This document shows positions 1,032 through 31,774 of a stretch of DNA of 32,142 nucleotides, in pieces. Every line of letters begins with the position of its first letter. Position 1 is the stretch's first letter. Both the position numbers and the translations under genes were made by a program. The notes under the pieces are model-generated. The model did not search any database and was not told the DNA's origin. It was given only the letters and a program-made list of their open reading frames with translations. This DNA comes from Octopus bimaculoides (Eukaryota), in the NCBI RefSeq assembly GCF_001194135.2, contig NC_068989.1, positions 39,731,084-39,763,225 of the forward strand, in the 5' to 3' direction.

Positions 1032-1056
1032 TTCCTTAACTAACTGTCTGTTCCAC
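1032..1056 (+). promoter_or_regulatory. U12-type branch site and AC 3' splice site of an upstream AT-AC intron (its donor lies outside the window)
   Basis: Exact TTCCTTAAC consensus, no polypyrimidine-AG signal, and AC 16 nt after the branch motif, directly before the open exon. Confidence 0.82.
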
Positions 1057-1182
1057 ATATGTGGAAAGTGAGAAAAACCTCTTGAAAGCAGAAAGTTTTC
1101 TCGAAAATTTGAAGAAATTACCTTCTTCAGATTCAAAGCTTGTTCAGATGTGGGCCATTAAACTGACTCTTGATTTTGCACA
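1057..1182 (+). CDS. TTC23: Internal coding exon A of a TPR-repeat gene (TTC23/TTC23L-like); phase 2 start and phase 2 end
   Basis: Reads A|TAT GTG GAA... = YVESEKNLLKAESFLENLKKLPSSDSKLVQMWAIKLTLDFA+CA. Preceded by TTCCTTAAC (1032-1040) and AC (1055-1056), followed by GTAAGT (1183-1188). An in-frame TAA at 1037-1039 limits how far upstream the exon can start. It resembles the remembered human TTC23 segment FKEAAENLTKAE...LSFAQ; BLAST confirmation needed. Confidence 0.85.
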
Positions 1183-1353
1183 GTAAGTAATTTCTTTTCA
1201 CTGTTTTGTCATCTTATTTCTATGTTTATGTGTCATTGTGGGTCTCTTGCTTGCAATGATTGTCCTCAAATATCAACCTCCTCAGTGTGAAATGTATGTG
1301 CATCTATGTATACATTTGTATACATGACTATCTGTGTGTATCTGTATGCATGG

Positions 1354-1386
<33 letters not shown>

Positions 1387-1989
1387 ACATTTGTATACAT
1401 GAGTGTCTTTGTATTTACTGACAGAGAAGCAAGTGCATGCAGGGTAGCTTCATCACTCTGTGTGCATCTTAAGTAAGTGTGGCTGTCAGCACTTTTGTAC
1501 ATGTAGGCTTTGTCCCAAGCTGACAATGGCCTCTCTCTTTGTAGCCGTGCCAGGCCAAACAATTTTAAAAGATGTCTCTAATCTCTGATCCGAAAATCTT
1601 TCAGAAAAGAATGCTCTGAATGTACTTATTGACATCCAGAATCATTCCCAGTCTATTGTTGCTCATACTTTCTAATGTCTACATTTAGAATGGGATTATT
1701 GATGTTCCAGTGATTACATTGTCCAACTGGATACATTTTTAGATACTAAATGTGCAACCTTGGCCTGTGTTTGACCAAGGCCTGCAGCTAGTCAAAAAAA
1801 AAAATGAACTGCAGAAATATGTAGTCTATAAATGACAACTCTGTTGTTCCTGTCATTTGTCATGAATCTTTGCAGTGGTCACAACTTTGGCATGTGTCTG
1901 TATATCATCAGTCACAGTACCCCTTAAACCCCACTAGAATAATTGTTGGAAATGAAATAAAAGAGTATTCACTCTTATCCTGTCAGTTG

Positions 1990-2480
1990 TTTCCTGAGAC
2001 AAGATGCAATGATCAGGTGTTAGCACAGCTCTGTGTTAATCCAGTAACAGAACCTGCCAGTCCACATCAGCTTGTCTTTCTAAAGGCCAACACAATGTCT
2101 GTGTGTATCCAAGATCCCATTCCAATTGCAAATTAACACTGATGTGTGAGCTGTTCCTTGAAATGTCCCCGTACATCTGAAAGAATCTGACTTCCAACTC
2201 TTGTCAAGTGCAAACAATCATGAACATGAAAACCTCATTTCCCTCTTTACTGTTCACATTCAGGACCACCTATATATCATCTGAATCCAGGAATATCAGG
2301 CTTACTTTTAGATCCAGGTATTTCCAGGAAAATACTCCCTTACCACTCAATCCAGCTGACTGAATGATGTATAAACCATTCAGTTATCCAGAATGAGAAG
2401 AAGCAACTCCATCTCAGAAATCCTGGTCTCGCTGATGCCTACTACATCTAGATGTAGAAAACAAAAATCATTGAGCAGGT
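1990..2480 (-). mobile_element. Old, decayed Tx1/L1-type LINE fragment (APE endonuclease region)
   Basis: Minus-strand remnants GISETRIS and VLICNWNGILDTHRHCVG, with nucleotide similarity to the endonuclease part of the 3291-5586 element; many stops and frameshifts. Confidence 0.55.
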
Positions 2481-2599
2481 ATCTCTGCTTCCATATACAC
2501 ACCAGGCCATGTACTTTTTGAGAGCCTGTTTTGTATATAGCTATGTTAAGCAAGCAGAAGCATTAAAAAAGTTGTGACAGGTATCTTACCCTCATTCAG

Positions 2600-2900
2600 A
2601 GGTAATTCTTTTACAGTTCCTTTGGAATGCTTCTCTGCAATCATTTTTTTTTACCAAACCTTTTTGCAATAATTATGTGGGACGCTTTTATTTCAAATGT
2701 GATAGTCGTTAGGTGTGGTTCTTACAGACGTTTCTCTTTTAATGTATTTTGGATAGTCAACACATTAAGGCAATATGGTTGATGTAGTCAAGGTGTCTGT
2801 CTATGCAGTATTGTTGGTGTGAAAAAAGCCTTGCAGTGGTCATCTTCTCACAATGTAATATTTGGCCTTTCTGATCTCCTCTTCCACCACCCTGACATGC
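2600..2900 (-). mobile_element. Possible highly decayed Tc1-like transposase N-terminal remnant
   Basis: Weak motif resemblance only (RSERPNIT.*EDD; AEKHSKGTVKN). Confidence 0.25.
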
Positions 2901-3129
2901 TCACAACCCCTTAAAACTGAATTATTTTAGGACACTTTCAAGATCCTCAAGGGGCAACTGAGCCTTGGAATTCCATTGACATTCTTTCTCAGTTCTGCTT
3001 TGGAGTAATAATAAATTTTGGTTACTAACACACCACCACCACTCATGTCAGCAACAACAATAACAACAATAATTCTTTCTAATTTGTCAAAAGACCAGCA
3101 ACTTTGAGGTGAATGTGCAAATTGATTAT

Positions 3130-3280
3130 ATTGACCCAAGTAATTAACTTGTACTTTATCTTATTGACTCCAACAGGATAGAAGGCAAAGCTGACCTTGT
3201 CTGGATTTGAACTCAGCACATAAAGTTTCAAAAGAAATGTCACTAAACATTTTGTCTGACATACAAATGATTTCACCATT
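3130..3280 (-). mobile_element. tRNA-derived SINE, family A (same family as 31191-31420), decayed
   Basis: Contains the reverse complement of the family core (GAAGGCAAAGCTGACC...ATTTGAACTCAG). Confidence 0.7.
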
Positions 3281-3290
3281 GTATCACTTT

Positions 3291-3332
3291 AGTAGTAGCA
3301 GTAATAGTAGTAGTAGTAGTAGTAGCAGCAGC

Positions 3333-3381
<49 letters not shown>

Positions 3382-5586
3382 ATAACAATAGTAATGATTT
3401 CATTTATTTGTCACAAGGGCAAAGGATGAGGGGGACAATACAAAGACAGACATAAAGTGTTGGGGTTTACGTATAATGAAATGATCAAAAAAAAAAAAAG
3501 GAAGAAAGTAAATATACACAGTATACACTGAAAAAGAAGGGACATATGCATAGCATACAAAGGTTTAACAAAGCAAAAAAAAAAGTGGCAGGGAAGATGA
3601 TAGAGATGTGGCCCTCCTGATACAGGAAGGCCTTTAGGGATAATCGAGGAACCCCACTGTCCAAGATTTTCCTCTCCAATTCCTTTTCTCCGACTCACAA
3701 GTCTACACTTAAAGAGGTACCATCCACTCTTGCCATTTTTGCAACTTTTAGCCACCTTTCAATAAACTCAGTCAAAGACAGCACTTCACTCTTCACTCTC
3801 AATTTCCTTTTCAAGTGAAACTTGAAGAAGTTAGTGAGAGCTCTACCAAAGAGGAATGTATCTGTCCTCAAGTCTTTCAGCTTTGTCCACCAAACAGCCT
3901 CTTTCACCACAGCCACCAGGCAATGGAAAACTGCCTTGCCTGCCTGATTAGAGGAGGGTGGCAGTGTGATCATCACTACAGACTCGACTGAGAGATGGAT
4001 CCATCCCACACATGACAGCAGTTGATTAACATAACCCCCAAGTCGACAATACCCGGACACTGAACGACAAATTTGTCTGACAGCACAGCCTGTAAAGTTT
4101 ATCTTAAACCAGTAACGCTCCCTGGTAAGTCCTCCAGAACAAACTAGCCAGTTCTTTCTCGTTGGTGCCCAGAGTCTCCCAGAGAATATCTGCGGCACTA
4201 ATTTCCGCAACACTAATCGCATTTCCGCGGCACTAATCCTATATAAATTTCTAAAGCAGAACATCCACTGATCCCATTGCCCAACTGGTAGAAGGTTGTG
4301 AGTACCGATGACATTTTAGGTGCCAGCTATTTAGTCTCGGTCTTTTCTTCAACCAGGACTGCAGCTCTGTCAAGGAGATAAGCTGCAGAAAGACAAGCCT
4401 CACAAAAGGACCCCACATGCACTCACCATCCAGAAATCGTTGCAGGTGGCATAACCTAAGAGTGTGTCTGCGCATTAGGAGCCATGGTATAGCTATTCCG
4501 CTACTCAGATGTTGGCAACAGACTCACTGCCTGACCATTGGAAGGTATCCCTTCCACAAGACATTAAATAAGAGACGCTCCAACCTGTCAAACAGTAACT
4601 GAAATAAGGCATGATGGTCAGGCGATAAATGAAAACAGAGGCAATGCTCTAATTGCCCTCTTCAGGGCGGCCCACCACTGGTTGTTGATGATTGCCCCCA
4701 TCAACTGTCACTAAACTAGTTCACTAATCCGGTCCCTGTCGTCTTTGCGTGCCGGAAAGAACATGTTTAACTTCCAGTTACCAGGTCTCTGTCTACGGGT
4801 CCTATCTAACTCAACTGTTCAGATCACAAACTTGTGGTCAGTGTAGCCGACCAATTTAAATTGTGGAAAAACTACACTATCCTTATCCTCTGACCTAACA
4901 AATACTCTATCTAGATATGATCAGGATGACCCATTGTGGTTGCTCCATGTCCACACTGGCACATCAGGGAAATCCAGTCGATACGTATCAAACAATTGGA
5001 AGACTCTGAGTAGGTTTCCGAGGTTTTTGCATCTCCTTCTTCTGTGTACTAGTCCTACAGAGTCCTTCTGTGCATCCAAAATCCCACTCCTGTCCCCTAC
5101 TAGTACTAAACTGCAAGACGTTACTGGGAATGTTTCTAGACACCTGAAGAGTTCTAGCCTTCCAGCCCCTGTCAGGGCATAGATGACCACCTTCACTACA
5201 TCTAGGACCACCAACCTGCCACCCAGGTCCATGAAGATTGATTTACTTCAAGATCTAAGGATTTTCAGAATAGTACTGCTACCCTGCTGCCCACTTCCAA
5301 CAGATCACATGATGAGACTATCTCATAATCATCGAAAATGGGTGCTAGTGCTTGCACATTAGAAATCTTTGTCTCACTAATTGCGGCTGCGTCTTAATTG
5401 AGTGACCTGAGGTTGTTTAACAAGTGACCTAGCTTCCAGGCTGACCCCAGGCCATGAACATTCACACACCCCACTCTGAAAAGGACCATGTTTATTGGAG
5501 AAACAAAATGGAAGAAGGTCACTTACCTTGGATTTTGAGAGGGTCAGCTGATTCAGCTGCTTTGTCTGATGCATCTGAACCAGCCG
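3291..5586 (-). mobile_element. Tx1/L1-clade LINE, 5'-truncated, RT domain deleted, (ACT)n tail, flanked by a 17-bp target-site duplication
   Basis: ORF2 starts MVLFRVGCVNVHGL (ATG at 5489), with APE motifs ISETK, SYLDRVF, YTDH and WKLN. It joins directly at ~4647 to post-RT sequence (IASVFIYRLT...LWKG...MRRHTLRL...LVAVVKEAVW...HLKRK...FIERW). 3' UTR has AATAAA (3402-3407); tail 3291-3394. CACCATTGTATCACTTT occurs at 3274-3290 and 5587-5603. Confidence 0.85.
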
Positions 5587-5603
5587 CACCATTGTATCAC
5601 TTT

Positions 5604-5622
5604 AGTAGTAATAGTAGTAGTC

Positions 5623-5664
<42 letters not shown>

Positions 5665-5672
5665 ATAATAAT
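5604..5672. repeat. (AGT)n/(AAT)n microsatellite
   Basis: Visible; directly follows the right TSD of the Tx1 element. Confidence 0.95.
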
Positions 5673-6225
5673 AACAGAATTCCCTGATGCAGTACCAGGC
5701 ACTAGCTCACATGGCTTTTGATCTTAACTACACTGTTTTTTGTCTTGGTATAAAATATGGGCTACAGCAAATATTCTGCTCAATACCACAGATTTGCTTG
5801 TCAATTGTTTGACCGTAACCAGTTGAAGATGTCCCTTAGTGACAGATCATATGTGCATCTCTGATCATGAGCAGAAGTAGTTTGGGAGCATCATAGCCAT
5901 GTGTTGAGAGGAATTCTTTGGGGTTTGAATAATTCACCTCTGGAAACATGGATGATTTGTTCATCATCCTTAAAACAACTGTTATTTAGGGATGTTTTGA
6001 GTGGGATGAGCTACTCGTCCTGGAGAAAATTTTTACTGGGCCCCACTTGCAAGGTCATGCACTGTTTATTTTGATAATGAGATCACCATGTCACACACAT
6101 ATGGTTGTGATGCATGTGCCTGGTGTACCCTTTTCAGACGGGTAGTCATGATGGCTATATTGGGCTTTGTATATTTTACCCCAGTTTCACTTTGATTGCA
6201 TGTGCTGCTCTCTCACATGATGATA
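5672..6225 (+). mobile_element. Interspersed repeat ending in an AAT-rich tail, probably a LINE 3' UTR or SINE-like element
   Basis: Recognised from memory as a common octopus repeat; no ORF; followed by an AAT/AAC-rich tail. Confidence 0.5.
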
Positions 6226-6319
6226 ATATTAATAGTAATAATTCTGACATTAACACAATAATATCATTACCAAAAACACCACCATCATCAACAAACAACA
6301 ACAATAATTATTAAAATTT

Positions 6320-6944
6320 TTGCGCAAGGCCAGCAACTTTACTTGGAAGGAGTAAGTTAATCACATTGATCCTAGTACTTGGCTGATACTCTGTGGAATT
6401 TGAACTTAGAAGAAATGCTTCTTAAACACTATTTTCTAATGCACTAACAATTCAGCCAACTCACTACTTTAACAACAACAACAACAACAACAATCATCCT
6501 TTCCACTAAAGGCACAAGGCCTGAAATTTTGGAGGGAGGGTGACAGTTGATTACACCTACCCAGTGCTCAAATGGTACTTATTTTATTGACTTTGATAGT
6601 ATGAAAAGCAAAGTCGATGTTGGTGGAATTTAAACTCAGAACATTAGGATGGACAAAATGCCACAAAGCATTTTGCTTGGTGTGCTGATGACTCTGCCAG
6701 TTTGCTGCCTTATAATTTCTAATTTTTGCACAAGGCCACCAATTTTGGGGTGGGGTTAAGTTGATTACATCAACCCCAATGCTCAACTGGTACTTATTTT
6801 ATCAACCCCAAAAGGATGAAAGGCAAGGTTGACCCCAGTGACATTTGAACTCAGAACATGATGGATGAAATGCTACAAAACATTTTGCCCAACATGCTGA
6901 TGATTCTGCCAGCTCGCAGCATTAATAATTATAACAACAACAAC

Positions 6945-6989
<45 letters not shown>

Positions 6990-7410
6990 CCATTCTACTA
7001 AAATTTGGGGAACGGGGACTAGTTTAATGCATCAACCCCAGTGTTTCACTGGTACTTCATTTATTGATCCCCAAAAGATGAAAGGCAAAGTTGACCTTGG
7101 CAGAATTTGAACTCAGAATGTAGCGACGGAGAAAATGCCACTAAGCTTTTTTCCCCGTGTGCTAACAATTCTGCCAGCTTACCATCTTATAATTTCAAAT
7201 TTTGGCACAAGGCCAATAGTTTTCGGAGAAGTGTTAAGTCAATTACATTGACCCCCAGAAGCTCAACTGGTACTTATTTTATTGACCCCACAAAAGGATG
7301 AAAAGCAAAGTCAACCCTGGCAACGTTTGAACTCAGAAGTTGAAGAAGATGGATGAAATGCCACTAGGCATTTTGCCCAGCATACTAATGATTCTTCCAG
7401 CTCGCTGCTT
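6320..7410 (-). mobile_element. Head-to-tail array of five family-A SINE copies (~6320-6470, 6495-6715, 6716-6920, 6990-7185, 7190-7410)
   Basis: The block GGTACTTATTT...AAGGATGAAAGGCAAAG...TTTGAACTCAGAA...CTGCCAGCT recurs clearly in four copies and in degenerate form in the first. Copies are separated by (AAC)n/(AAT)n tails. Confidence 0.8.
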
Positions 7411-7932
7411 TAATAATAATAATAATAATAGTAATGATGATGATGATGACGATGATGACGACGACGACGATGATGATGATGATGATGATGATGTTGTTGA
7501 TGTTGTTGTTGTTGGTAATAAATAAGAATAATAATAATAAAAATAATATCTGACATTGATATATGATCAAAAAGAAATATTAAGAGATAGTGTAAGAGAA
7601 TGAAGACAGGTCATATATTCAGCTGAATGAATCTGAGTGTGTATGCTGGTGTATGTATGTTTTGTTTGTATCTATAGGAAAAATGCCATTTGGATATGTT
7701 GAGATTCCTAATTAATCCAGAGACACTCAACAAAAATAAATATTTCAAGTTTACTTCGCCCTTACGCACATTTGGCAAACATCATTTACAATAGGAAGTT
7801 TTATTTAGTTTCTGTTGTTTGTTACCTTTTTATGTTAACTCCGTCAGTTTTATTTGGCAAATGGTTTAAGAATAGATATCTTTTTTTGTCTGTTTATTTG
7901 TTTATTGCTTTTCTGTATTTCTCTTCTGTTAG

Positions 7933-8059
7933 ACTTTACAGCAAACAGAAGAAACAGACAGAAGCTGAGGATACTTACAAACAAGTTGTCGAACTTATTG
8001 AGGCAGCTCATGGTGAAGGAAGTCCACAGTTAATAGCGCTCTATTTAGACTGGGGCAAA
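7933..8059 (+). CDS. TTC23: Internal coding exon B of the TTC23-like gene; phase 2 start, phase 0 end
   Basis: Pyrimidine tract plus TTAG acceptor (AG 7931-7932). CA from exon A plus the first A gives CAA (Q), then LYSKQKKQTEAEDTYKQVVELIEAAHGEGSPQLIALYLDWGK, a TPR-like helix pair resembling remembered TTC23 QVYQGQKKSKEALSHYQAALEYVEISKGETS. Followed by ATATCCTTT, a U12 donor. Confidence 0.88.
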
Positions 8060-8068
8060 ATATCCTTT
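8060..8068 (+). promoter_or_regulatory. U12-type 5' splice site ATATCCTTT
   Basis: Exact match to the RTATCCTTT consensus at a codon boundary after AAA. Confidence 0.85.
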
Positions 8069-8357
8069 ACGTAACGCTATACTTTTTAAGAAAGAATATT
8101 ACCATTATCATTATTATTTCAGAAACATGCACAATAAAATGTTAAAATTGCAAGATAATTATGCAAACGTACATATAACCCTGCTACTATAGCCTCTTCC
8201 ACTGGAATTGTTAGATACTCTATGCATATAAAATTCGTTTTCATTTCTTGTTTTCATTTTTTTCCAGCTGATGGATACAGTTTTTTCACTTCATTTCCAA
8301 GTTTTCAGCTATTGATTTTAACATGGAAAAATAGTTGAAAGACTATGCTGTATATAA

Positions 8358-8390
<33 letters not shown>

Positions 8391-8410
8391 TACACATGCA
8401 CACCCATTTG

Positions 8411-8585
8411 TCATTGTTTGCTTAACGTCCACTTTTCCATGTTTGCATGGGTCAGATGAAGTTTATTGAGGCAGATTTTCTATGGTCCAATACCCATCCT
8501 CTTGCCAAACTTTGTTTCCAAGCAAAGAAATATTTTCCCATGGCCAGATATTTTTATGCAGAATATTGGAAATGAATTACACTGT
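8411..8585 (-). mobile_element. SINE family D fragment (reverse complement of 11045-11280)
   Basis: TTAACGTCCACTTTTCCATGTTTGCATGGGTCAGA...AAATATTTTCCC matches the family 3' end. Confidence 0.65.
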
Positions 8586-9093
8586 TCATATGACAGTGAC
8601 TCTCATTTACAACTATCATGTTATATCCAAACAAGGATATCTGAATTGAGCTGCTGTGCTACAGATTCTAGGCTCCTATCCATTCACCCTTATGTCCTTA
8701 TGGTAAAAAAGGACATAACTCTAATTCCCCCTCCACCATTCTTTCTTTTTTCTGTTTTCTTTTTCATTTTTTTCCAGTGTTTTCAATCTTCCACCTTTTC
8801 ATTTACTCCCTTCTTGCCTTTTCTCATATTTTCTCTTATCCTGTCTTCCTGTTTTAGCTTGTTATGCCATGTGGACAGAACCAGAGGATTGTGTGAAGGC
8901 ATCAGACATGTTATAAAATACTGACTGAACTGTTTTCATCACATGAAACTATTAGTGGCTCATAAACACATACTGTGTTTATTGAATAATAGATACAAAT
9001 ATATGCAGCTTCTTAGTTTTTTCTTTTTTTCTATTATTCTCTTTAATTTTGTCCTCTCCTTCAAACATTCATATCTCAAAACCAATGGGAGCA

Positions 9094-9136
<43 letters not shown>

Positions 9137-9189
9137 TGCAAGTTAACACATAAAAGGAAAAGAAAATGCAATTTCCAATCCAAAAATTT

Positions 9190-9975
9190 AAGTATTTAAA
9201 AAATATCAATTAAATATATCAGTTTACACAATGTATCTATCCTCAGCTTCCACTTTGGCCTCAAGACTGCTCCAGAATGTGGCCTATGCATTCCTCAGTG
9301 TGTTTCTAGGAAGATCTTTGAACACCTCCTTCATCTTGACCACCAGCTCAAGCTTGGTGTTTCAGGCCGTGTGGTTGGTGCCTTTCTCAACCACACCCCA
9401 CACGTAGTAATCTATAGCCTTACAATAAGAGAATTAGGAGGCCAGAATTTGGGGCTGGTGGAGTCATAGAATTCTCTGGTAACCACTTCTGACTCTTGCT
9501 AGAGATGTGGCAAGGATCTGAATCCTGTTGTCATACATAGGGCTTTCCAACAACAATCCTCTCCAGCCAGGGTTTGACCACAGTCTCCAGCAATTTTATG
9601 TAGTTGTCTGAATTAAGTCTAAGTCCTTGTTCAAGGATGTGAGTATTACCTGCTGTGTCCCTTCCTGCTGGCCACAGCTTTGTAGTCTCCATTACAACTA
9701 TCCATGTCACATCTTACATCTTTTACAGTGTTCACAGAGCACTGAGTGGTAGTCATGATGTCGACATTTTGATACTTAGCATGAATCCTCATGATCCAAG
9801 TAACACATTTCCAATACTCACATGGTTTCTATTCTTCTATATCAGCTAACTTATTCTTAACTACAACTTAAGTTTTATGCTCTGCAATGACATTGGCTGT
9901 TCTTCAATATATCAAGTTGTTCCTGAAAGAAAAGGAGACGTAAACTTGCCATATTTAGCTTGAACACATTGTATA
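9190..9975 (-). mobile_element. Internally deleted Tc1/mariner remnant (DD37D/maT-like)
   Basis: C-terminal LEQGLRLNSDNYIKLLETVVKPWLE...QQDS.PCH...FWPPNS...EAEDRYIV* fused at ~9645 to N-terminal-like CSVNTVK...DYKAVASRKGHS. Ends are uncertain. Confidence 0.7.
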
Positions 9976-10155
9976 TGCATACATATAAATGCATTACGAG
10001 CTGCAATGTGTCAATTACATTGTTTCTCAATATTTATATCTTCTCTCAGTCTGCCTGTAGGTTCCTGCTTGTCTGCTTGCCTGATTGGCTAACTGCTCAA
10101 CTGCCCACCAGCCTGACTGTTTAGTATTGTTTAGCTTAATGTGCGTATAACATAA

Positions 10156-10157
<2 letters not shown>

Positions 10158-10200
<43 letters not shown>

Positions 10201-10450
10201 TTCTTATTCTTTAAACTTCCAACTTCTTGCTGCCATTGGGTTGGACAGTTTTACAAGATATGATGAGGGTTGAGGACTGCATCATGCTCCAATGTCTGAT
10301 TTACTTGTATGGATAGATGCCCTTCCTAATTCCAACCACTTTGAAGACTGTACTGGATTCTTTTTCATAACACCAGCACTAGTGAGGTCACCATGTAGCT
10401 TGCAAAACAAAGATCCTCTTTGAATGAATGGGGCTACAGTAGAGAGGGCA
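10158..10450 (-). mobile_element. Family C repeat (RTE-type 3' end or RTE-partnered SINE, GGAAGGGCATC motif) with (GAT)n tail
   Basis: GATGCCCTTCCTAATTCCAACCACT and a (CAT)n tail at 10158-10200; a purine-rich extension runs to ~10790. Confidence 0.65.
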
Positions 10451-11280: not shown

Positions 11281-11301
11281 TACTATATACATATATACAT
11301 A

Positions 11302-11459
11302 GGTGCAGCATGGCTGATGGTAAGAAGCTTGCTTCCCAACCACATGGTTCTGGGTTCCATCCCACTGCGTGGCACCTTGGGCAACTGTCTTCTACTATAG
11401 CTTCAGTCTGACCAAAGCCATGTGAGGGGATTTGGTAGACAGAAACTGAAAGAAGCCTG

Positions 11460-11505
<46 letters not shown>

Positions 11506-11756: not shown

Positions 11757-11794
11757 TGTGTACATACATACATATATACATATTATATATATAC

Positions 11795-20393: not shown

Positions 20394-22942
20394 TCATACC
20401 ACTTTTTTGCTCTGTCAGGTCCATACTTGTTGCAAAGTGTCCAATGGACAATCCTTGCTATGTTGTCATGACGTCTCTTATATTCTTTCTGGGCTAGTGG
20501 CGTACATTGACTGGTAATATGCCATACGGTCACACCATTTTGTCCACAAATTCTGCACTTATCACTTTCTGATGTGTTGTCTATTTTGTATTTGTTGTAA
20601 TTCATTCTTAATGCTTTGCTCTTGGGCAGCACAGATTAGAGCCTCCGTTTCTGGTTTTAAATCACTTTTAGTCGTCCTTAGCCATCGTTTTTCTCTGTTT
20701 GTCTTACCTTCAACATCCCTATGAAATTGTCCATGCATTCTTTTCTTTATCCATCTATTTTCAGTTTTATTCATTCTCAAATCCTTGTACAGTGCTTTAT
20801 CTTTGCAAGCTTCCATCCTACACAAGCCTGACCTTCTTACTTCCAATAATAGCAGTTCTGCGGCATTTTTTACATACCATGCTATGTTGTTTTCTTCTGC
20901 TCTAATGCTGTGTTCACATCCAGTCAGTCCTCTTCCCCCTCTTTTTCTTGGTACATATAGTCTGTCTATGTCACATTTTGGGTGGAGTATCCCATATCTA
21001 GTCAGCAACTTCCTTGTCTTTCCATCTAAGCTGTTTAGTTTATCTACTGTCCATGCAATTACCCCTGCTCCATATCTAAGGAGTGAAACCTCCCAGGTGT
21101 TGATAACTGCTTCGATCTTATTCCGTCTGTTTAATTTCGACTTAAGGATCCTTCTTAGTCTGTGCAAGTACTCCACCTTAAATTTTTCTGTCATTTTTTT
21201 GTCCATCAATTTATCTATTTCCAAAATCCCCAAGCACTAACAGCACATCTCTTCTATCTGCTTAATAACCTCCCCCAACAGTATCGTTAGTCTGTCCATA
21301 CATTTGATTTCGCCTCTCTTCAAGACTAACACACCACACACTCTCAGTATGAACTCCATTCTGATATCAGTACTGAAGGTATACACCGTATCAATGAGGG
21401 AACTGACTTGGAATTCATCTTTACCATAAAGTTTGAGGTCATTCATGAATAACAAGTGGTTGACATTTTGTTGGCGGCTTTTGAATATATACCTAGCCTT
21501 TGCTTTCCTCGAAATCAGTGTTAGTGGTATCATGCACAGTACAAAGATCAGTGGGGATAGGCAGTCCTCTTGGAAATTGCCTCTCCTAATTTCTACTATC
21601 CCTAAACTTCTTCCATATGCTGTCAGTTCCATCCTTCATTTCACCATACTTTTTCCAAGCAATCACTCAACATTCAATGCAATACCAAATAGGTTCATAC
21701 ATTCCATAATCCAAGAATGTGGGATCATATTCTATGCCTTACGATAATCGATCCATAACATGGCTAAGTTACTTTTCCTCCTCTTGCAGTCTCTAAGTAC
21801 AGTTTTGTCTACCAGGTTTTGATCCTTGGTACCTCTGCACTTACGCTTGCAACCCTTCTGCACATGTGGCAGGACACCATTTTTTTCCAGATCACCATGC
21901 ATTTACTCTGTGACTATTCCAGTCAATAATTTCCACATAAGTGGCAAGCAGGATATTGGCTTGTAATTGTCTACTGTATCACCTTTTTCAATGTTTTTCA
22001 ATCACAGTACTGTCCTACCCAGTGTCAACTACTCTGGTGTTACTTGGTCAGCATTTAACAAGGTATTGAGTTGCATAGCTATTCGTGCATGACATTCAAC
22101 AAATCTTTTGATCCAGTAACGTTGAAATGTATCTGGTCCAGGGACCTTTCGATTGCCCATTTTTATGCTGATTTCCTTCACTTCCCTAACTGAAACGACT
22201 ATTTTTGCCTGTTTTGGACAGACTACTGTTTGTTTCAGTTCTTGCAACTATTCAGCATCCTTCTTGTACTCCTTGTCTTTGTTCTAGATGTCACTCCAAA
22301 ACCTTTGACTTTAAATGTTATCTGGTATCAACTTTTCATCTGCACACTCTCCATTTATTTCTTTGTAGAATCTCTTCTGATCTACTTTGAATAACCTATT
22401 CTGCTGGTATCATTTCATTCTTACCATCTTTGATTTCTTTACAATGAAGCACTGTTTCAGTTCCTCCATTACCACTTTCAGGCCCTTTCTTTCAATATCA
22501 TACTTCCTGTTTTATGATTCAGTGCGACCATGAAATAGAGAATAGGAAACCAGACATAGTGTTAATTGAGAAAGAAAGCAAATGATGCTGGATCATAGAT
22601 ATAGCATGCCCAGTTAACAACAAGGTATGCGATAAGGAAGAAAGAAAAGTTGATAGATATAACAGGTTAGCTTGGGAGGTTAAACAGTTGTGGTTGCTGA
22701 AAAAGGTGGTAGCAGTACAAATAATTGTCGGAGCCCTGGGAATTGTGAGTAAAATTCTTGAGAAGTACATAGAACAAATAGGGGCTGCAATAAGGGTGGA
22801 GCACTTGCAGAAAATCGCACTGCATGGTACCGCTCAAATACTCTGGATGGTGCCTGAAAAATAAGGGGTGTTACCTTAGTTCATTAGTAGTGAACAGCTG
22901 ACACTGTAGTACATCTCCAGCATTAGAAGCTGTGCAAAGACA

Positions 22943-23001
<59 letters not shown>
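20394..23001. mobile_element. Dong/R4-clade RLE LINE with a 5' inversion: inverted body 20394-22508 (-), 3' end 22510-22945 (+), (TAA)n tail 22946-23001
   Basis: Minus strand: [21 protein letters not shown] motifs (IRRGNFQEDCLSPLIF, NHLLFMNDLKLYGK), LHPKCDIDRLYVPRKRGGRGL, zinc knuckle CRICGQNGVTVWHITSQC...RRHDNIARIVHW...KKWY. Plus strand: FMIQCDHEIENRKPDIVL...IIDIACP...IIVGALG...LQKIALHGTAQIL*. Flanked on the left by (TAA)n at 20301-20393. Confidence 0.88.
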
Positions 23002-23129
23002 TTGTTCATCCATTGTTGTTGATGACCAAAGACATCACATGAGAGAAGATGGGTCACAGTGCATCTGGCTGTGGCCAATCAGGCCAATGCATGCCTGCAA
23101 GTTTCTGCCACAAGTTAGGCACTGGTGAT

Positions 23130-23275
23130 CTGCTGGGAATAAAGGCAAGGAGTCTGTTAAAGTTACCAGCCTTGATGAAAAGATGGCTACTACCTATTAT
23201 CATGGTACTTTGCAAAAGGATGTCATAGAAGTGGTCCTTATATTTGTCTGTGAGTCCTGACAGTGGCAATACATG
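23130..23275 (-). mobile_element. Decayed RTE-type APE endonuclease fragment
   Basis: GLTDKYKDHFYDILLQST...LFIKAGNFN resembles the RTE motif QP GL...KD.FYD.L...GDFN. Confidence 0.45.
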
Positions 23276-24254
23276 TAAAGAACAGTGTTGCTGTCATGTT
23301 GCATGTGACTTGTGTTGTGGTATGCTATTTCTGCATGTGCATTTGGTATAGAGTTAATTCTTATCATTAACAATTAAATGTCGTCATTTCTATGAACAAC
23401 AAAGGAAAGATGTTTACACTATTAAGATATATGAGATTTATATGGATTTGGTATAACAGCAGTCGCTGTCATGTCTTTCTTTGAATTAGCTGGTTCGGAT
23501 GTATTGCAGTCACCACAACCACCATCGTTGTCATCATCGCTGTCATCGTTGACCACTGTCTTGGTGCCACAGACACGACTCTGGTTTGCTTTCTGGTTCT
23601 CTGCTCCTTTTTGCTATCTGCTGGTTAGTAGCTAAAATGCTCTAAATATACAACCAATGTTCTTCATAGAAAAAATACACTAAAAATTTAATCCTGTTTC
23701 ACCAGAGGTTTAAGTGGTTGGTGTTTTGATGACGTCAGCAATATTTGAACAAATTACATTTCAGTTACTTAGTTTGTTTGTTTTTTTGCATTGGATACAG
23801 TGATCTAAGTTTGATTTCTAAGTTTTTCTGTGACTGTCAGATATTCCTGCTATACCAGTCTTAATTTCAATTATTCTATCACATACTATGATTATCACAA
23901 TTACATTATTTCTCCATCTCTGTTCCTGCAATATAACCAACTTTGCTAACCTTTGTGTAGTTATGCCTGGTGTATAAATGTTATAAGTTCATAGCCACCA
24001 GTTTAATAATGTAAAAAAAAAAAACACAATCATCATCACCACCACCGATATCATCATCATTATTGTGATGGTGATCATCATCATTGTTATGAGGCACATA
24101 AAACCAGCATCATCAGTATGGTTACTACCATCTTTTCCATCATCATCACCACCACTACCATTATCATCGTCATCATCGTCATCATCATCACCACCACCAC
24201 CACATCATCATTCGCATTATATTATCATCATATCATCATCATCATCATCATCAT

Positions 24255-24650
24255 ATTATTATTATTATTATTGTTCAGTAGTTTTATTTTTATAACGTGT
24301 TTTCACTTCACTACCGAGCGCAGCTCTGTGTGCCTTGGGTATGTGCTGTGGTTTGCTGTGGTACTCTTATGGTTACTGTATTGAAAGTGTTTTGTGTAGG
24401 ATGTGTGCAGTGCCCAGTAGTGCAATTTTCTGTATGTTATATATATTTGTAAGTCCTGGTGTTTTTGTTGTGTATTTGTCTGAATATTTTTTTATTATAC
24501 CTAAGGCACCTACTATGATAGGAATTGTTTCTGTTTTTAGATTCCACATTTGAGTTACCTCTATTTCCAGGTCTTTGTATTTTGAAAGTTTTTTCCATTT
24601 CATTTAGAGAAACGTTGTCATCTGCTGGTATTGATCCATCAATTAGAAAG
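24255..24650 (-). mobile_element. 5'-truncated 3' end of a second Dong/R4-type family, flanked by (TAA)n on both sides
   Basis: FLIDGSIPADDNVS...EKLSKYKDLEIEVTQMWNLKTETIPIIVGALG...IQKIALLGTAHIL; (ATT)n at ~24255-24272 and 24662-24760. Confidence 0.82.
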
Positions 24651-24687
24651 CTTTTTTTTCTTTTATTATTATTATTATTATTATTAA

Positions 24688-24761
<74 letters not shown>

Positions 24762-25415
24762 CATCACCATCCTCATCACAATCACCACAAACCACTGACA
24801 CCATCATCGATACCATAACCATCATCAACAAACAGCAGGACAAGGTTTCAAACTCTCCTTCAATTTTGAGGCCAGTAGTCACCTGATTTAGCCACCATCT
24901 TGTCTGCAACATAAAAGAAAACAAAGTTAAAATAAAAGACAAAAGAAAAAATAACCAAGAAAAATGCAAGTGTTTTCAGTGATTCCTTCAGTTAATTGGT
25001 TAAACAATAATATGTTCATTCTTCTATTCAAGCTTACTTCAATATTTCTTCAGAATTTTACAGTGTTTCATTGATTCGTTAATTTAGTATTTAATATTTT
25101 TCTTTTCCACTGAACAACCATTAACATCAAAGGAATTCATCAAACATAAGACACGAGTAAATCTTTTTGAGGACATCGAATGTTTCTGTAGGATGGCAAA
25201 CTGTTGTCATCACCACCACCATCACCACCACTACCACCACATCTTTTTCTCCTCCTCCATCCCCTGCTGTCATCATTGTCATCCTTGTGTTCCTACGCTT
25301 GTGTCTGTAAGAGGTTACTTTTCTTGTGATGCACTTGGCAGACAAGAAGTGCATTTGAGAGATATATATAAACAAACATATTTGGAGAAGGAAGGAGAAA
25401 GAGAGAAGTAGAGAA

Positions 25416-25458
<43 letters not shown>

Positions 25459-25468
25459 NNNNNNNNNN
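25459..25468. other. Assembly gap (10 N)
   Basis: N run after (TA)n. Confidence 1.
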
Positions 25469-25601
25469 ACTCTGAGTGGCTGAGGAGTGAATCTTTGATA
25501 TGTAAATATCAATAAACCTACTACACACATTGTGTACCATTTTTTCATATGTATTTCTAAACAAATACTCTAACACACACACATGCATGCATGCACGCGC
25601 G

Positions 25602-25650
<49 letters not shown>

Positions 25651-25912
25651 CGATTTTACATCTGCTGTTTCTTGAGTTCAGCAGTTTTGCCATCTTCTCA
25701 TCACTCATCAAGTCTTTTGTTCAGAGCACTCAAGAAAAGACAAAAAAGTTGTCCATCTTTCTGTGCTGCCAGTCATTGCTACCTCTCTTCTTGGACCATT
25801 TGTTACTGACATTCATCACTCACTCTTAGTTTTGTCTGTTATTATCCACTACTTTCTCACCCAAACATTCTCCAACTCCCTTCAGCCACTTATTCTGATT
25901 CTGTTTTTTTCA

Positions 25913-25917
<5 letters not shown>

Positions 25918-25990
<73 letters not shown>
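25918..25990. repeat. (CT)n microsatellite
   Basis: Visible. Confidence 0.95.
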
Positions 25991-25993
<3 letters not shown>

Positions 25994-27992
25994 TGTCTTC
26001 TCTGTCATGCCCAGAGCAAATGAACGTATCTTACAGTAGGAAGGGCTCTTTACTGTTACTGGGTACAGAGCAACCCCATTCATGCTAATGCCATGATAAA
26101 ATGAACCCAGTACACTTTTCAAGGTGGTTGGTGAATGATTAGAGACAGTGTAAGGTTGAAAAGTACCTTTAATTTTGTTGAGTACTTGTGAACATCTCTA
26201 GTGTTGGTACCATGATCAAATGCACTCATTATGCTCTGCAAAAGGGTTGCTGATAGAATGAGCATTCAGTCATAGAAATCAAGCCAAAAATGAATCTTAT
26301 GGGTGAGATTTGGAATTCTGATTTGACTCGGAGGGCATGGAGATACCTGTTGTATTGTTGTATAACCTGCTAGAAATACCAGCCAAATTTCTCTTGAAAC
26401 ATAGTTTTCCTTCTTAAAAAAAAAGGAGACTTATTAGATAGTATAATCCTGAATCACTGTCTCAAAATAAGATGAGATGCTCATGACTGGACTAATTTGA
26501 TCATAAAATTGGCTGATCAAAACTGACCTTGGGCTAAACAGCAACAATTTATTGGCATTATATTTAATCAAAAGAAATCAGTATCATTGTTTGTAAGCTC
26601 AGGATATATATTTTGCCATTAAAGGCTGTTGGTTAATAGATTTTTAAGTAGGTTTCACTGAAACACTTAACTGTGAATAACTATTTACAATAGCTATTGT
26701 GAATAAGTATTGGAAAATGGCAATTATGACTAGCTATTGTGCATTGGTTTTGTTATTTCGAAGCAAATATATTACTTTGTAGAGATGTGTATGTAAGCAG
26801 AAAATATGGTAAACATAAGATAATTAGGTTGAAATTATTCCCAAGATTTTTCAATCATATTCTAATCAAATAAAGGTTTAGCAATGGAATGCATGCATGC
26901 TGTGATGGTTTTTGTCATTGAATTGAACTGAATTCACCACTGAGGATAGTTGAAAGGCAGCAGAATTATGTTCCTGGGTAATGTTAATTTGTGGTAGATT
27001 TGCTTCTTCATATGTATCTATGTATCATTGGTTCCCCCCAACATTCCTTATCCACCCTTCATTACATCCACTCCTCAATCCTACCCTATTTCTACAGATG
27101 TTACTTACTCTTCTCTACCTTTCTTACTTATCTGCCCTCAGCAGCTGCTCTTCACGATATCCACCTACCTCATCCATTTCTAGTCTCTAACCATCTCTCA
27201 CTCCCCCATATACTCTTACAAACTCTATTCACCTGCACTCACTGTTCTCTTGTTCCTACTCATTTTTACTCTCCTATTATCTTGAGGCACCTCACACCTC
27301 ATCACTATTTTTATTTCTTTCTGGCCCCACCCTCATCACTCCCAACTTCCCTTCAGTAATGTGAGAAGCCATGAGGCTACTTTACAGCAAGAAAGTAGCC
27401 TCAGTAAAGACTACTGACCACATCACTCTAAACATTGTTTGCTGCTACTGTAGGAACAGCAACAGACTATGACACTCTTTTGAGAAATGCTTGTTGCTAT
27501 GTATCAGGCTTCAGATTGAACCAGCAAAATGAAGAAACGAATTGATCCAACAGTGAGCTATGCCATGCATAAATTAATTTTGTTATTGTAATGAAAAAAG
27601 AAGCAAGAAAACTCTCAAACTATTCAGTTCATGCTTTGATAGGTCTTGCTTCAATAGAACAGCAGCAAGACATTGCTTCTGTCTTTTACCATGTGGAATA
27701 TAGTGAAGACAGTATTACATAACCTTAAACCACTCTTGTTGGATATAAGAGCTTTAGAACCACAGACCATTGCAGCTTCAGCAGTTACTACAAGCTACAC
27801 ATCTTTTGATTAATTATAAGGATTTTAATTCTCCATAATTGACTGGCTTTTGCAATCAGTTACATTTTGATAAAGTAGTCCAAGTTTACTCAGCAATAGA
27901 AAGGCACATATTTTGTCAGATGTAACACTTCCAAGTTGTAGCCATTATGATTTCAGTACTTATTGCAAGCTACATAATTGTAAACAAATCAC

Positions 27993-28501
27993 TATGCTTG
28001 GTCAAAAACAGAACCCATAAAAATTTTATTAAATCCTACAAAGGTCCAGCAAATTTCTTTGAATAAAAGTCATGTTCTTTTCAAAATATGCTCCAAATGG
28101 CATACGTTGCACAGACACTTGCAAATGCCACGCAAAATTGTCAATTACTTGAACACATTCCTCTTTGGGGATTTCCCTGATTTCTGCTGTGATCGCTGCC
28201 TTCAGTTCACCAATCGTTTGAGTGTTGTTCTAGTAAACATTATCCTTGAGATACCCCCGCAGATAAAAATCTGGAAGGGTTCAAGTCTGGTGAATGTGGT
28301 GCCCACTCAATGTCACACTTCCTGCTGATCAGTCTCTCCTGAAATCACTCTCTCAGCCAGACTAGAGAGTTATTTGATGTGTGGGTGGTGGCCCTGTCTT
28401 GCTGGAACCACTGTTCATCTTGATATAACCCTCTGCGTCATTTTATTCAAACAGTTTTATTCAAAGATTCGTGGGTTCTGTTTTTTTTTGGGGTCACCCT
28501 G
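27993..28501 (-). mobile_element. Internally deleted Tc1/mariner-superfamily element (DD41D-like C-terminus)
   Basis: QWFQQDRATTHT...ERLISRKCDIEWAPHSPDLNP...; right end GGGGTCACCCTG|TA; AAAAACAGAACCCA is present in inverted orientation near both ends. Confidence 0.65.
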
Positions 28502-29169
28502 TATCACTGGAATCAACAACTTTGCAGTTATAAAGTATGCATTCTTGAATAGAAGTCAGTACCACAGGAAACAACAAGTCTCTTTTCTTTTCAATTGGTC
28601 TAAAGTACTAGGTATGTTGAACTTGCAAGTACACTTTTGTGAGCATGATTACATTTTGATTACATCCCTGGAAGATACAAAAGTGAGCAAACATGTGGTT
28701 TTGTATTTATAGCTGGAAATAATGAAACCATGTGGCTTCCTTCTCTCCCCTCTGAGGTTAACACTTTTTTTTATCTGCTATCACTTTCAATACCCTAACA
28801 TATCTACTCCACTACCCCTGTGCTTCTTCTATATTTCACTCCATCATTTGCTACACTCACCTCTATTTGCCACACTTAACTCTGTCCTTCCCACTCACCA
28901 AGTCCAGACCTCTGTATCACCTCACTTATTCTCACCACCCCCAGTGTCCCAACTCTTCACCATCATCTCTCTCACTATTGTTCTCTTAATTTCACTCTCT
29001 AACTCATTTGCTCTCTTTATCTTACTCTCTAACTCACCCTTCTTTCCATCTGGGGTACCCATGTATCTACTCTACAGCAAGGTACCTATCCCTGTCCCTC
29101 TATATCTTTGATCTCTCATCAAATGGCACAAAACCACTACCACCTTCAATACCACTCCCACCTCCCAGC

Positions 29170-29445
29170 TGAAGAGGTCATTGTCTTGCAAGGTACTTGG
29201 TAACCCTGTTGGTGTTGGTACCACATAAAATGCACTGATGCTATTGTCACATAAAGTGCACTGGTGCTGGTACCTCATGAGAAACACCTAGTACACACTG
29301 TAAAGTGGTTGGCATTAGGAAGGGCATCCAGCTATAGAAACTATGCCAAAATAGACAACGGAGCCTGCAGCAGCTCCTGTCAGTCTGTCCAATCCATGCC
29401 ACCATGGTAAAACAGACATTAAATGATGATGATGATGATGATGAT
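29170..29445 (+). mobile_element. Family C repeat with ~22-bp internal subrepeats and (GAT)n tail; CT-rich upstream extension from ~28720
   Basis: GTGGTTGGCATTAGGAAGGGCATCCAGC...CAGACATTAAATGATGATGAT. Confidence 0.75.
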
Positions 29446-29886
29446 TTCAACTACCAGTCTATCGTTTCTGCTTCTCATCATATGCTGTTTATGTTACAAT
29501 TACATCATGGGTATTTATATACACATGCACATATTATCATTTTGTTTGCTTGTTTGAAATTTTGTTGAATAAAAACAATAAAATAAGACATGAAAGATAA
29601 GAATAAGACAAGGGTAATTGTAAACACATGTCATTACCAACCTCCACAAAAATGCAGACCTCCTTAACTCTTTCACAGTTTCTTAACACATTGCTCTTTC
29701 TAAATAACTATGAGCTTTATTATTTTATTCTTTTACTGGTTTTAGTTATTTTTTTTAATATTTTACTTAGAAGGGAAGGCAGTGCCCATGACACTTTGAG
29801 GTGAAAATAGTGGGAGGAAGGTAGGAGTGTGTACTCAAACCAGAGACCTAACCCTAATGCTTGCAACTGAGTGGGATCTGCTAAAA

Positions 29887-30182
29887 CAGGAGTTTTCAAA
29901 CTGGTCCGCGGACCACAGGGGGTCCGCAAGGACAAGACAGGGGGTCCGTAGACAGCAAATACTTTTTATGGGCAATTTGATTTTATATATGTTTTTTTAA
30001 TCAAAATCTTTTAATTGACAATAAACCCATTTGTTAAATACTGTTAAATAAATAAATGCCAAAATATATGTTATTTTAAGCAAATATTTATGTATAAATT
30101 TCATAAGCGTTTATAAGGGGGTCTCTAAGGTAAAGCCTGAAATATAAAGGGGTCCGCAAGTCAAAAAGTTTGAAAACCCCTG
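29887..30182. mobile_element. hAT-family MITE, 296 bp
   Basis: TIRs CAGGAGTTTTCAAACT / AGTTTGAAAACCCCTG (15/16 match); 8-bp TSD TGCTAAAA at 29879-29886 and 30183-30190; subterminal GGGGTCCG repeats. Confidence 0.92.
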
Positions 30183-30400
30183 TGCTAAAAGACACTCCAA
30201 GACCAGGTAGTGGTGATAATAAACATCTACCAACCTGGAATGGAGCTATGCTGAGAAATATTTTCACAAGTGTTGTCAATTGAATTGACTCCATTACTTA
30301 TGCTGTCTTTGTAATTAGTTTCTGGTCAACCTTGGCTGAGCTGACCTATGGTCCAAGACAGTCTAGCCATGACCATCTCTGTTTATATATCCAAAAGTAT

Positions 30401-30658
30401 ATAAAAAGCATTGGTGTGGATGCTGGTGCCATGTAAACACCACTGGTGCTGGTGCTACTTAAACATTGGTGATGGTGTCACATAAAAAGCACCCAGTACA
30501 CTCTGTGGGGTGGTTGCCATTAGGAAGGGCATACAGCCTTAGAAACCAAACCAAAACAGACTATGGAACCTGCTGTGGCACCTGACTTTACCAGTTCCCA
30601 TCAAGCCGTCCAACCCATGCCAGCATGAAAAACGAACATTAAATGATGTTGATGATGA
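30401..30658 (+). mobile_element. Family C repeat copy
   Basis: GGTGCTGGTGC subrepeats, ATTAGGAAGGGCATACAG, GTCCAACCCATGCCAGCATG, GAT tail. Confidence 0.75.
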
Positions 30659-30681
30659 GATAATCAAACTTGTTTTGAGCG

Positions 30682-31089
30682 TTATCTTTTACTTTTTTGA
30701 TTCACTAGTCTGTGGCCATGCTGCGGCAATGCCATGAATTTTTAGTTGAATGAATCAACCCCAGTACTTTGTTTTTTTTTAAGAAGTGGTACTTATTCTA
30801 TCAGTCTCTTTTGCTGAACTGCTAAGTTATGGGGACACAAACACCCCAACACCGGTTGTCCTGTGATGATGGGGGGACAAACATAAACACAAAGACACAC
30901 ACAGATTTATATACATGTATATACATACGATGGGCTTTTCTTTCAATTTCCGTCTACCAAATCCACTCACAAGGCTTCGGTTGGCCCAAGGCTATAGTAG
31001 AAGACACTTGTCCAAGGTGCCACACAGTGGGACTGAACCTGGAACCATGTGGTTGGGAATCAAGCTTCTTACCACACAACCATGCCTAC
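30682..31089 (-). mobile_element. Family B CORE-like SINE with 3' extension
   Basis: Reverse complement of the 11302-11756 family (TTTCCGTCTACCAAATCCACTCACAAGGC...AAGACACTTGTCCAAGGTGCCAC). Confidence 0.8.
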
Positions 31090-31190
31090 TGTAAACTGTG
31101 AAATTTTACTGTTACTTCTAGCAAACTCAGTCACTCCACTACTTATTTTATAGACTGATCCATAGTTTCTCAAACTGAAAGAAATGAACA

Positions 31191-31420
31191 GGCGGTGAGC
31201 TGGCAGAAATGTTAGCAAGCCGGGCGAAATGCTTAGTGGTATTTCATCTGCCGTTACGTTCTGAGTTCAAATTCCGCCGAGGTCGACTTTGCCTTTCATC
31301 CTTTCAGGGTCGATAAATTAAGTACCAGTTACGCACTGGGATTGATATAATCGACTTAATCCCTTTGTCTGTCCTTGTTTGTCCCCTCTATGTTTAGCCC
31401 CTTGTGGGCAATAAAGAAAT
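31191..31420 (+). mobile_element. Young full-length family-A tRNA-derived SINE with a 14-bp TSD
   Basis: Head GGCGGTGAGCTGGCAGAA...GAGTTCAAATTCC, CpGs retained, AAGAAAT tail; AAGAAATGAACAGG at 31179-31192 and 31421-31434. Confidence 0.88.
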
Positions 31421-31581
31421 AAGAAATGAACAGGAATGTGGGTCTTGAAATGGTTTCGAACTGAAGAACTTGAATTTTCTACTTCATCCTCATTACACAA
31501 AGCATTTTGTCTGATGCTTACATGATGATGCTGCAGTCCACTTATCTATTGTTTATTTTCATTCTTTTCAACTTTGAAAAA

Positions 31582-31602
31582 TTCCTTAACAATTGATGCC
31601 AC
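31582..31602 (+). promoter_or_regulatory. U12-type branch site and AC 3' splice site
   Basis: TTCCTTAAC followed after 10 nt by AC; no AG between 31537 and the exon start. Confidence 0.83.
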
Positions 31603-31685
31603 TTTGTACAACAGGGTGGTAAGCGTGCCAATTTCCATCAGAGCATCAAGCTGTTCCAGAAGGCACATTCCATTGCGACTGCCAA
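31603..31685 (+). CDS. TTC23: Internal coding exon C of the TTC23-like gene; phase 0 start, phase 2 end
   Basis: TTCCTTAAC (31582-31590) and AC (31601-31602), then TTT GTA CAA... = FVQQGGKRANFHQSIKLFQKAHSIATA+AA, then GTATGT (31686-31691). The phase matches the exon B donor. It resembles remembered TTC23 VEQALGLHDVSINHFLQAH. Confidence 0.82.
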
Positions 31686-31774
31686 GTATGTAGATAACAA
31701 CTCTTCTTCAACTTCAATATTACTTTCTCTGTACTGTTTTTGTTAATTAAGTGGCTTATCAGTTAAGTAGGTTG

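Follow-up and report, generated by a model that had tools for sequence, protein, structure and literature searches.

An internal piece of TTC23, the gene of tetratricopeptide repeat protein 23, is contained in the stretch of Octopus bimaculoides DNA analyzed here (hereafter "the window", which comprises 32,142 nucleotides (nt) of contig NC_068989.1, positions 39,731,084 to 39,763,225 of the forward strand). Two U12-type AT-AC introns would alternate in it with U2-type introns, a reading to which we assign a probability of about 93%. The window corresponds to an internal part of a TTC23 gene of ~183 kilobases (kb) on the + strand, and its three exons (A, B and C) provide residues 193-303 of a 462-residue tetratricopeptide repeat (TPR) protein. 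Neither the gene nor its AT-AC junctions are new, both being annotated in RefSeq, and TTC23/TTC23L is a catalogued minor-intron family.

Gene identity, exons and splice motifs

The identity of the gene is carried by the spliced peptide of exons A-B-C, which was used as query in an exhaustive search of 1.84 billion representative proteins. Its residues 1-111 are 100% identical, in one stretch, to positions 193-303 of a 462-residue protein, which a cluster look-up returned as XP_014777218.1 (also XP_052826607.1), "tetratricopeptide repeat protein 23 [Octopus bimaculoides]". The joined reading frame of the three exons is open over 111-112 residues (YVESEKNLLKAESFLENLKKLPSSDSKLVQMWAIKLTLDFAQLYSKQKKQTEAEDTYKQVVELIEAAHGEGSPQLIALYLDWGKFVQQGGKRANFHQSIKLFQKAHSIATA). 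The O. sinensis orthologue, XP_029641422.2 (462 amino acids, aa), falls in the same 90% cluster and differs at 6 of the 111 residues within 193-303, which assigns the window to O. bimaculoides. Full-length single-stretch matches were obtained with proteins named TTC23 or TTC23-like by NCBI in O. sinensis, Argonauta, Magallana and Glandiceps, the family naming being that of NCBI annotation and not that of a direct alignment to human TTC23. Word-indexed protein searches found nothing with the spliced peptide, and almost nothing with XP_014777218.1 or the orthologue alignment as queries. The Pfam family TPR_12 matches the full XP_014777218.1 with E = 3e-26, passing the curated cut-off; on the 112-residue fragment alone, the TPR matches remain below cut-off (E = 8e-6). 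The nearest solved structures are TPR domains of kinesin light chains, the only structure matches found, and no solved TTC23 structure was among them. Judged by its protein sequence, the octopus gene is TTC23.

The original prediction, made from the letters of the window alone, had proposed a TTC23 gene from a cephalopod, and both proposals are borne out by the match to the O. bimaculoides RefSeq protein. It had also described the gene as hidden, a description that has to be withdrawn because the public RefSeq model already contains these junctions; indeed, the RefSeq models of O. bimaculoides and O. sinensis use exactly them. The gene spans 182.6 kb in GCA_001194135.2 (O. bimaculoides) and 182.4 kb in O. 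sinensis, and the O. bimaculoides protein was located on one contig only. RefSeq also describes an isoform X2 (XP_014777222.1, 435 aa) without the 27 residues VSNAHS…KSHQQ (residues 397-423, in the C-terminal TPR region), which suggests an alternative splice 3' of the window.

The exons and splice signals, all of them on the + strand, are as follows:

1032..1040, +, TTCCTTAAC, branch point of the first AT-AC intron; 9/9 match to consensus, branch A at 17 nt from the intron's 3' end
1055..1056, +, AC 3' terminus of the first AT-AC intron; RefSeq protein ...EKK/YVESEK, AC at the same position in Argonauta and Glandiceps
1057..1182, +, exon A, 126 nt, phase 2/2; residues 192 (last base) to 234 of XP_014777218.1 by exact spliced mapping
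1183..7932, +, U2-type GT-AG intron A-B, 6750 nt; GTAAGTAAT, pyrimidine tract and TTAG, the only GT-AG split giving the protein
7933..8059, +, exon B, 127 nt, phase 2/0; residues 234 (last base) to 276 by exact spliced mapping
8060..31602, +, second AT-AC U12-type intron (putative), 23,543 nt as assembled; ATATCCTTT at 8060-8068, TTCCTTAAC at 31582-31590, AC at 31601-31602
31603..31685, +, exon C, 83 nt, phase 0/2; residues 277-303 and two bases of codon 304, the protein continuing ...SIATA/N
31686..31691, +, GTATGT donor of the next intron, U2-type; no match to [AG]TATCCTT, homologous intron GT-AG in all four orthologue loci

Exon A is preceded by TTCCTTAAC (1032-1040) and then by TAACTGTCTGTTCCAC (...GTTCCAC) up to 1056, and is followed by GTAAGT. 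An AG was looked for across 967-1067 and none was found, which leaves the exon without a usable AG acceptor. The RefSeq protein reads ...EKK/YVESEK, so the exon must start at 1057, and the KKY residues over this junction are kept in the orthologues. Exon B is flanked by the pyrimidine-rich ...TTCTGTTAG on its 5' side and, from 8060 on, by ATATCCTTT on its 3' side. This donor stands straight after the phase-0 end of the exon and matches the consensus of the U12 5' splice site, ATATCCTT, at 9/9 positions; a single GT lies near the exon end, at 8071. Upstream of exon C, TTCCTTAAC (31582-31590) is followed by AATTGATGCCAC (...GATGCCAC) up to 31602; the branch site again matches at 9/9 positions, its branch A is 13 nt from the AC end, and the first AG near the exon is at 31613. 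Thus, both introns have a TCCTTRAC-type branch point (at 1032 and 31582) within the ~10-20 nt from the 3' splice site described for U12-type introns, and both end in AC without a usable AG or a strong polypyrimidine tract. The pyrimidine fraction of the last 25 nt is 0.72 in the first AT-AC intron and 0.52 in the second, vs. 0.80 in the neighboring U2 intron (A-B). Neither the A-B intron (GTAAGT…Y-tract…TTAG) nor the intron 3' of exon C (GTATGT) matches [AG]TATCCTT, and both are classed as U2-type.

On recomputation, the exon coordinates, the motifs and the phases (2/2, 2/0, 0/2) given in the original prediction were all reproduced. Its two further proposals, that two introns carry the sequence hallmarks of U12 AT-AC introns and that the order is U12-U2-U12-U2, agree with these motifs and with the donors of the A-B and post-C introns.

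The motifs are less telling by number than by position. Two copies of TTCCTTAAC are present in the window, each on the + strand, where 0.35 would be expected, and as many are reached by 3 out of 100 shuffles; ATATCCTTT occurs once vs. 0.42 expected, a count that is unremarkable. Chance is excluded because each motif stands exactly at an exon boundary that is set independently by protein identity and homology. As for the mechanism, the U11 small nuclear ribonucleoprotein (snRNP) would pair with the /ATATCCTTT 5' splice site and the U12 snRNP with TTCCTTAAC, the branch site located 13-17 nt from the terminal AC. Catalysis would then be completed by the U4atac/U6atac.U5 tri-snRNP. The A-B and post-C introns would be ordinary U2-type GT-AG introns. 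Since U12 and U2 introns alternate, the messenger RNA (mRNA) would need both spliceosomes, acting alternately.

Rival splicing, assembly gaps and the first donor

For the junctions themselves, XP_014777218.1 was mapped on the window and every split reproducing the protein exactly was enumerated. For A-B, the canonical choice is the GT-AG pair 1182^7933; for B-C, only 8059^31603, ATATCCTTTA…GATGCCAC (...CCAC), gives the exact protein, whatever the type of splice site allowed. Such an exact mapping is circular if the RefSeq model is doubted, and hence a second enumeration covered all pairings of GT-AG, GC-AG and AT-AC sites up to ~50 nt from the boundaries. The exons might be real and joined through cryptic U2-type GT-AG or GC-AG sites, with ATATCC and TTCCTTAAC being coincidental. 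Such sites do exist (a GT at 8071, AGs at 1067 and 31613), the GT at 8071 and an AG at 31643 are in frame, and the count of ATATCCTTT alone is not significant. Nonetheless, 8071…31643 is the only in-frame GT-AG alternative at B-C, and it adds ISFT and deletes the 14 residues FVQQGGKRANFHQS, while the GC-AG alternatives delete ALYLDWGK; both blocks are conserved in the orthologue alignment, so that every GT-AG or GC-AG alternative to 8059^31603 either shifts the frame or loses conserved residues. At the first junction, there is no AG within 100 nt 5' of exon A. The orthologue alignment has no missing residues at either AT-AC junction, and Logan contigs of a related species, presumably spliced mRNAs, carry the whole protein uninterrupted, with KKYLASEK and EWAKLEQSKGK at the two junctions; the RefSeq protein, the orthologues and these transcript contigs all need 8059^31603 and a start at 1057. 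Furthermore, identical codon positions in four other species show the same motifs. GT-AG, GC-AG and AT-AG alternatives were accordingly rejected at both junctions (frame shifts, loss of conserved residues, or no usable AG), and joining through cryptic U2-type sites is extremely improbable.

The very long and repeat-filled introns could also be taken as the sign of an unexpressed or decaying TTC23 paralogue or pseudogene. Against this stand three open exons out of three, the 100% identity to a RefSeq protein of which a second isoform (X2) is described, splice motifs that match the consensus perfectly, and the location of the protein on a single contig; we give this explanation hardly any credence. 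Slightly more room, though still very little, is left for a mis-assembled or incomplete locus, with one more constitutive exon concealed in the gaps, or with exons B and C not truly adjacent. Three assembly gaps of estimated length (15948-16482, 17158-17602 and 25459-25468) do lie between exons B and C, all of them inside the intron 8060-31602, and (TA)n microsatellites, a common cause of assembly gaps, adjoin two of them (15948 and 25459). However, exons B and C are contiguous (…DWGK/FVQQ…) in the O. bimaculoides protein and, without a lost residue, in O. sinensis, whose orthologue has an equal length of 462 aa, and in all other aligned orthologues, where the sole length difference at the junction is an 11-residue insertion in the Solemya model. 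Both octopus assemblies give nearly the same gene span, and the donor at 8060 and the branch site and AC at 31582-31602 make a matched AT-AC pair. No reading frames cross the three gaps, which leave the coding interpretation untouched.

Several points weigh against two U12-type introns in this gene. Only the 3' half of the first intron (branch site and AC) lies inside the window; its donor and the upstream exon fall beyond the 5' end, and tblastn of the TTC23 protein on the window gave no match for residues below 185. The AT end in O. bimaculoides is thus read from the RefSeq junction and the orthologues. The branch site of this first intron, at 17 nt from the 3' end, lies towards the upper limit of the usual distances. 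It is from the motifs that we infer excision of both introns by the minor spliceosome. N accounts for 990 of the 23,543 bases of the second intron, whose true length may therefore differ from the assembled one, and a gap could contain a lineage-specific, unannotated alternative exon.

For the unseen donor, the original prediction had specified an upstream exon ending in phase 2 and followed by ATATCCT. The phase fits the protein, ...EKK/YVES, with the codon AA/A split over the junction, and the donors homologous to the first intron are ATATCCTTTT in Argonauta and ATATCCTTTA in Glandiceps, both of the ATATCCT type expected of a U12 5' splice site. The upstream octopus exon, coding for ...LVNLHHILAVTKCSEKK, is thus predicted to end in phase 2 (..AA) before ATATCCT, which is supported because the protein needs the AA/A split and because Argonauta, the closest available relative, has this arrangement.

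The second intron holds all three gaps, microsatellites and decayed transposon open reading frames (ORFs); it would have grown to ~23.5 kb through microsatellites and transposon debris, the gaps falling in the same content. At 13230-14778 (- strand), short ORFs contain …PYSPDLAPANFHPF… and …PPYFLDIALSDYHLFRSL…, motifs which we take to be mariner/Tc1-type transposase remnants; Pfam gave no significant match on the ORFs of this region. At 20562-22247 (- strand), ORFs resemble a decayed non-LTR (long terminal repeat) retrotransposon, with a weak RVT_1 match under cut-off (E = 0.065), and a 223-aa ORF downstream of the RVT_1-like ORF has no Pfam match. Elsewhere in the window, a (TG)n repeat lies at about 1350-1385, and a long imperfect (GTA/AGT)n microsatellite with GTG variants occupies 31778-32142, from ~90 nt after exon C to the window end. 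An Rfam scan of the whole window gave no match.

Orthologous loci and their gene models

Four orthologous loci were compared by the same protein mapping, those of Glandiceps talaboti, Argonauta hians, Magallana gigas and Solemya velum. In octopus protein numbering, the first intron is at codon position 192/193 (phase 2) and the second at 276/277 (phase 0):

Glandiceps talaboti (hemichordate, RefSeq XP_077987971.1): first, gaa/ATATCCTTTA…TTCCATGAC…CCAC; second, aga/ATATCCTTTA…ATCCTTAAC…TAAC
Argonauta hians: first, caa/ATATCCTTTT…TTCCTTGAC…GTTAC; second, aaa/ATATCCTTTC…TTTCTTAAC…GTTAC
Magallana gigas: first absent, one continuous exon, residues 150-243; second, aaa/ATATCCTTTG…ATCCTTGAC…AAAC
Solemya velum: first absent, one continuous exon (annotated model); second, aga/ATATCCTTTT…TGCCTTAAC…, end AA or AG

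The exon boundaries and phases over the region are the same in octopus as in the orthologues of the four species. The second intron has its ATATCCTTT donor, position and phase in common with Argonauta, the oyster, Solemya and Glandiceps, although its length differs, the orthologue introns measuring 0.4-4.3 kb vs. >23 kb in octopus, and its 3' end in Solemya (AA or AG) is unlike the octopus AC. The first AT-AC intron is shared with the orthologues in Glandiceps and Argonauta, whereas the bivalves are without it: in both of them (loci L003, 6399-6680, and, for Solemya, L002, 8023-8305), it is missing and the exons on either side form a single in-frame exon, which has the appearance of a clean loss of a minor intron. 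Both AT-AC introns being common to a mollusc and a deuterostome, the simplest dating is to the bilaterian ancestor, which both introns probably reach or predate. A fuller history can be put forward only tentatively and is, in our judgment, somewhat doubtful: the twin AT-AC introns would be an ancestral feature of bilaterian TTC23, both kept by octopods and the hemichordate, the first lost by bivalves, and each vertebrate paralogue would have kept only one minor intron after the TTC23/TTC23L duplication, that of TTC23 being now GT-AG. As a separate observation, JGI contig 3300019029 (L007, 107-871) holds a divergent TTC23-like ORF of 539 aa beside an SBDS-family gene on a 3-kb contig, which, being uninterrupted, is possibly a transcript.

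Two of the deposited models of these relatives contain spurious residues at AT-AC introns. In Argonauta hians, GAB1603543.1 (locus L001 of BAAFZT010000031.1, L001 positions 13020-17355) runs on past the ATATCCTTTT donor and is spliced at a GT-AG pair farther downstream, giving …RHKYPFTHS/HLIK…, in which YPFTHS is spurious, KYPF being A/ATATCCTTT translated on to the next GT. Splicing it again at the AT-AC sites yields LAVTKSTRHKYSDSEEHLIKAED, colinear residue for residue with octopus LAVTKCSEKKYVESEKNLLKAES; the deposited model is also truncated (314 aa). In Solemya velum, KAL5020176.1 (locus L002 of JBHNWI010000258.1, L002 positions 9543-10683) likewise reads through the ATATCCTTTT donor, which puts ~11 spurious residues (ISFLEWAIFEFSQI) into the protein at the second junction; they start with ISF, that is, ATA TCC TTT, and are found in no orthologue. 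The candidate 3' ends of this intron are an AA (VEQSKGRH) or an AG (QSKGRH), 9 or 15 nt after TGCCTTAAC, and a non-canonical minor intron of the type AT-AA or AT-AG is conceivable. The expectation that gene finders restricted to GT-AG would mis-model the gene thus holds for the Argonauta and Solemya models, both of which read through ATATCC, but not for the octopus RefSeq model, which uses the AT-AC junctions.

Comparison with mammalian minor introns

Human TTC23 has been taken as a model minor-intron gene, its minor intron staying in the transcript after RNPC3 knockdown (PMC12332006), and MIDB lists TTC23 and TTC23L with one minor intron each (PMC6717393 supplement), so that the look-up which the original prediction had proposed finds both of them among the minor-intron genes. 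The mammalian TTC23 minor intron is of the GT-AG subtype (AAA/GTATCCTTT; 184 nt in human, 203 nt in mouse), and that of TTC23L is AT-AC (CCA/ATATCCTTT in mouse, CCG/ATATCCTTC in human) (PMC6717393). The AT-AC subtype makes up ~22-24% of mammalian minor introns, and 50 genes have two minor introns and 3 have three, in human and mouse alike (MIDB; PMC6717393). The statement that AT-AC introns usually occur once per gene is thus correct as to "usually once", but two minor introns in one gene are an established minority pattern, with 50 genes in MIDB, uncommon and not exceptional. TTC23 is not mentioned in the supplement text of a pan-eukaryotic minor-intron survey.

The position of the human TTC23 intron was also sought through the reverse transcription PCR primers of PMC12332006, which were translated and slid along the orthologue alignment. 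Three mutually exclusive placements of similar score resulted (columns 245/291, 483/537 and ~150/196), and the placement was rejected as ambiguous. Two metagenome contigs with the human forward primer, high in GC and without the reverse primer, were taken as bacterial chance matches and equally rejected.

As a discovery, the octopus locus has little weight, given the RefSeq junctions, the catalogued TTC23/TTC23L and the ~fifty mammalian genes with two minor introns. It serves rather as a clean positive control for the reading of U12-type introns from raw sequence, and the comparison exposes two deposited models with spurious residues (GAB1603543.1 and KAL5020176.1). Its added value is that both AT-AC introns appear to be ancient (octopus and hemichordate), one of them being apparently lost in bivalves, which adds a little to the picture of how minor introns evolve. 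Should the mammalian introns prove to lie at these two positions, TTC23 would offer a natural series, compact in size, for the study of how minor introns are lost, switch subtype and expand from 0.4 to >23 kb.

In mouse, TTC23 binds IQCE and EFCAB7, sits at the ciliary EvC zone and promotes Hedgehog signaling (bioRxiv 10.1101/156059), and by orthology octopus TTC23 may work like its mammalian counterpart in this role. The two would also be alike as genes that depend on the minor spliceosome, as the motifs suggest for octopus, and the octopus protein has the TPR_12-type architecture; they differ in that mammalian TTC23 has one GT-AG minor intron and octopus two putative AT-AC ones, one of 23.5 kb. 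The minor intron of mammalian TTC23L is AT-AC, with a donor of the same type as that of the second octopus intron, whose nine donor bases equal those of the mouse Ttc23l site (MIDB 5' splice site score 100), although TTC23L has only one minor intron in MIDB, where its expression is by far highest in one tissue column. Genes with two or three U12-type introns resemble octopus TTC23 in interleaving more than one minor intron with major ones; what would set octopus TTC23 apart from them is that both of its minor introns are AT-AC, with one U2 intron between them.

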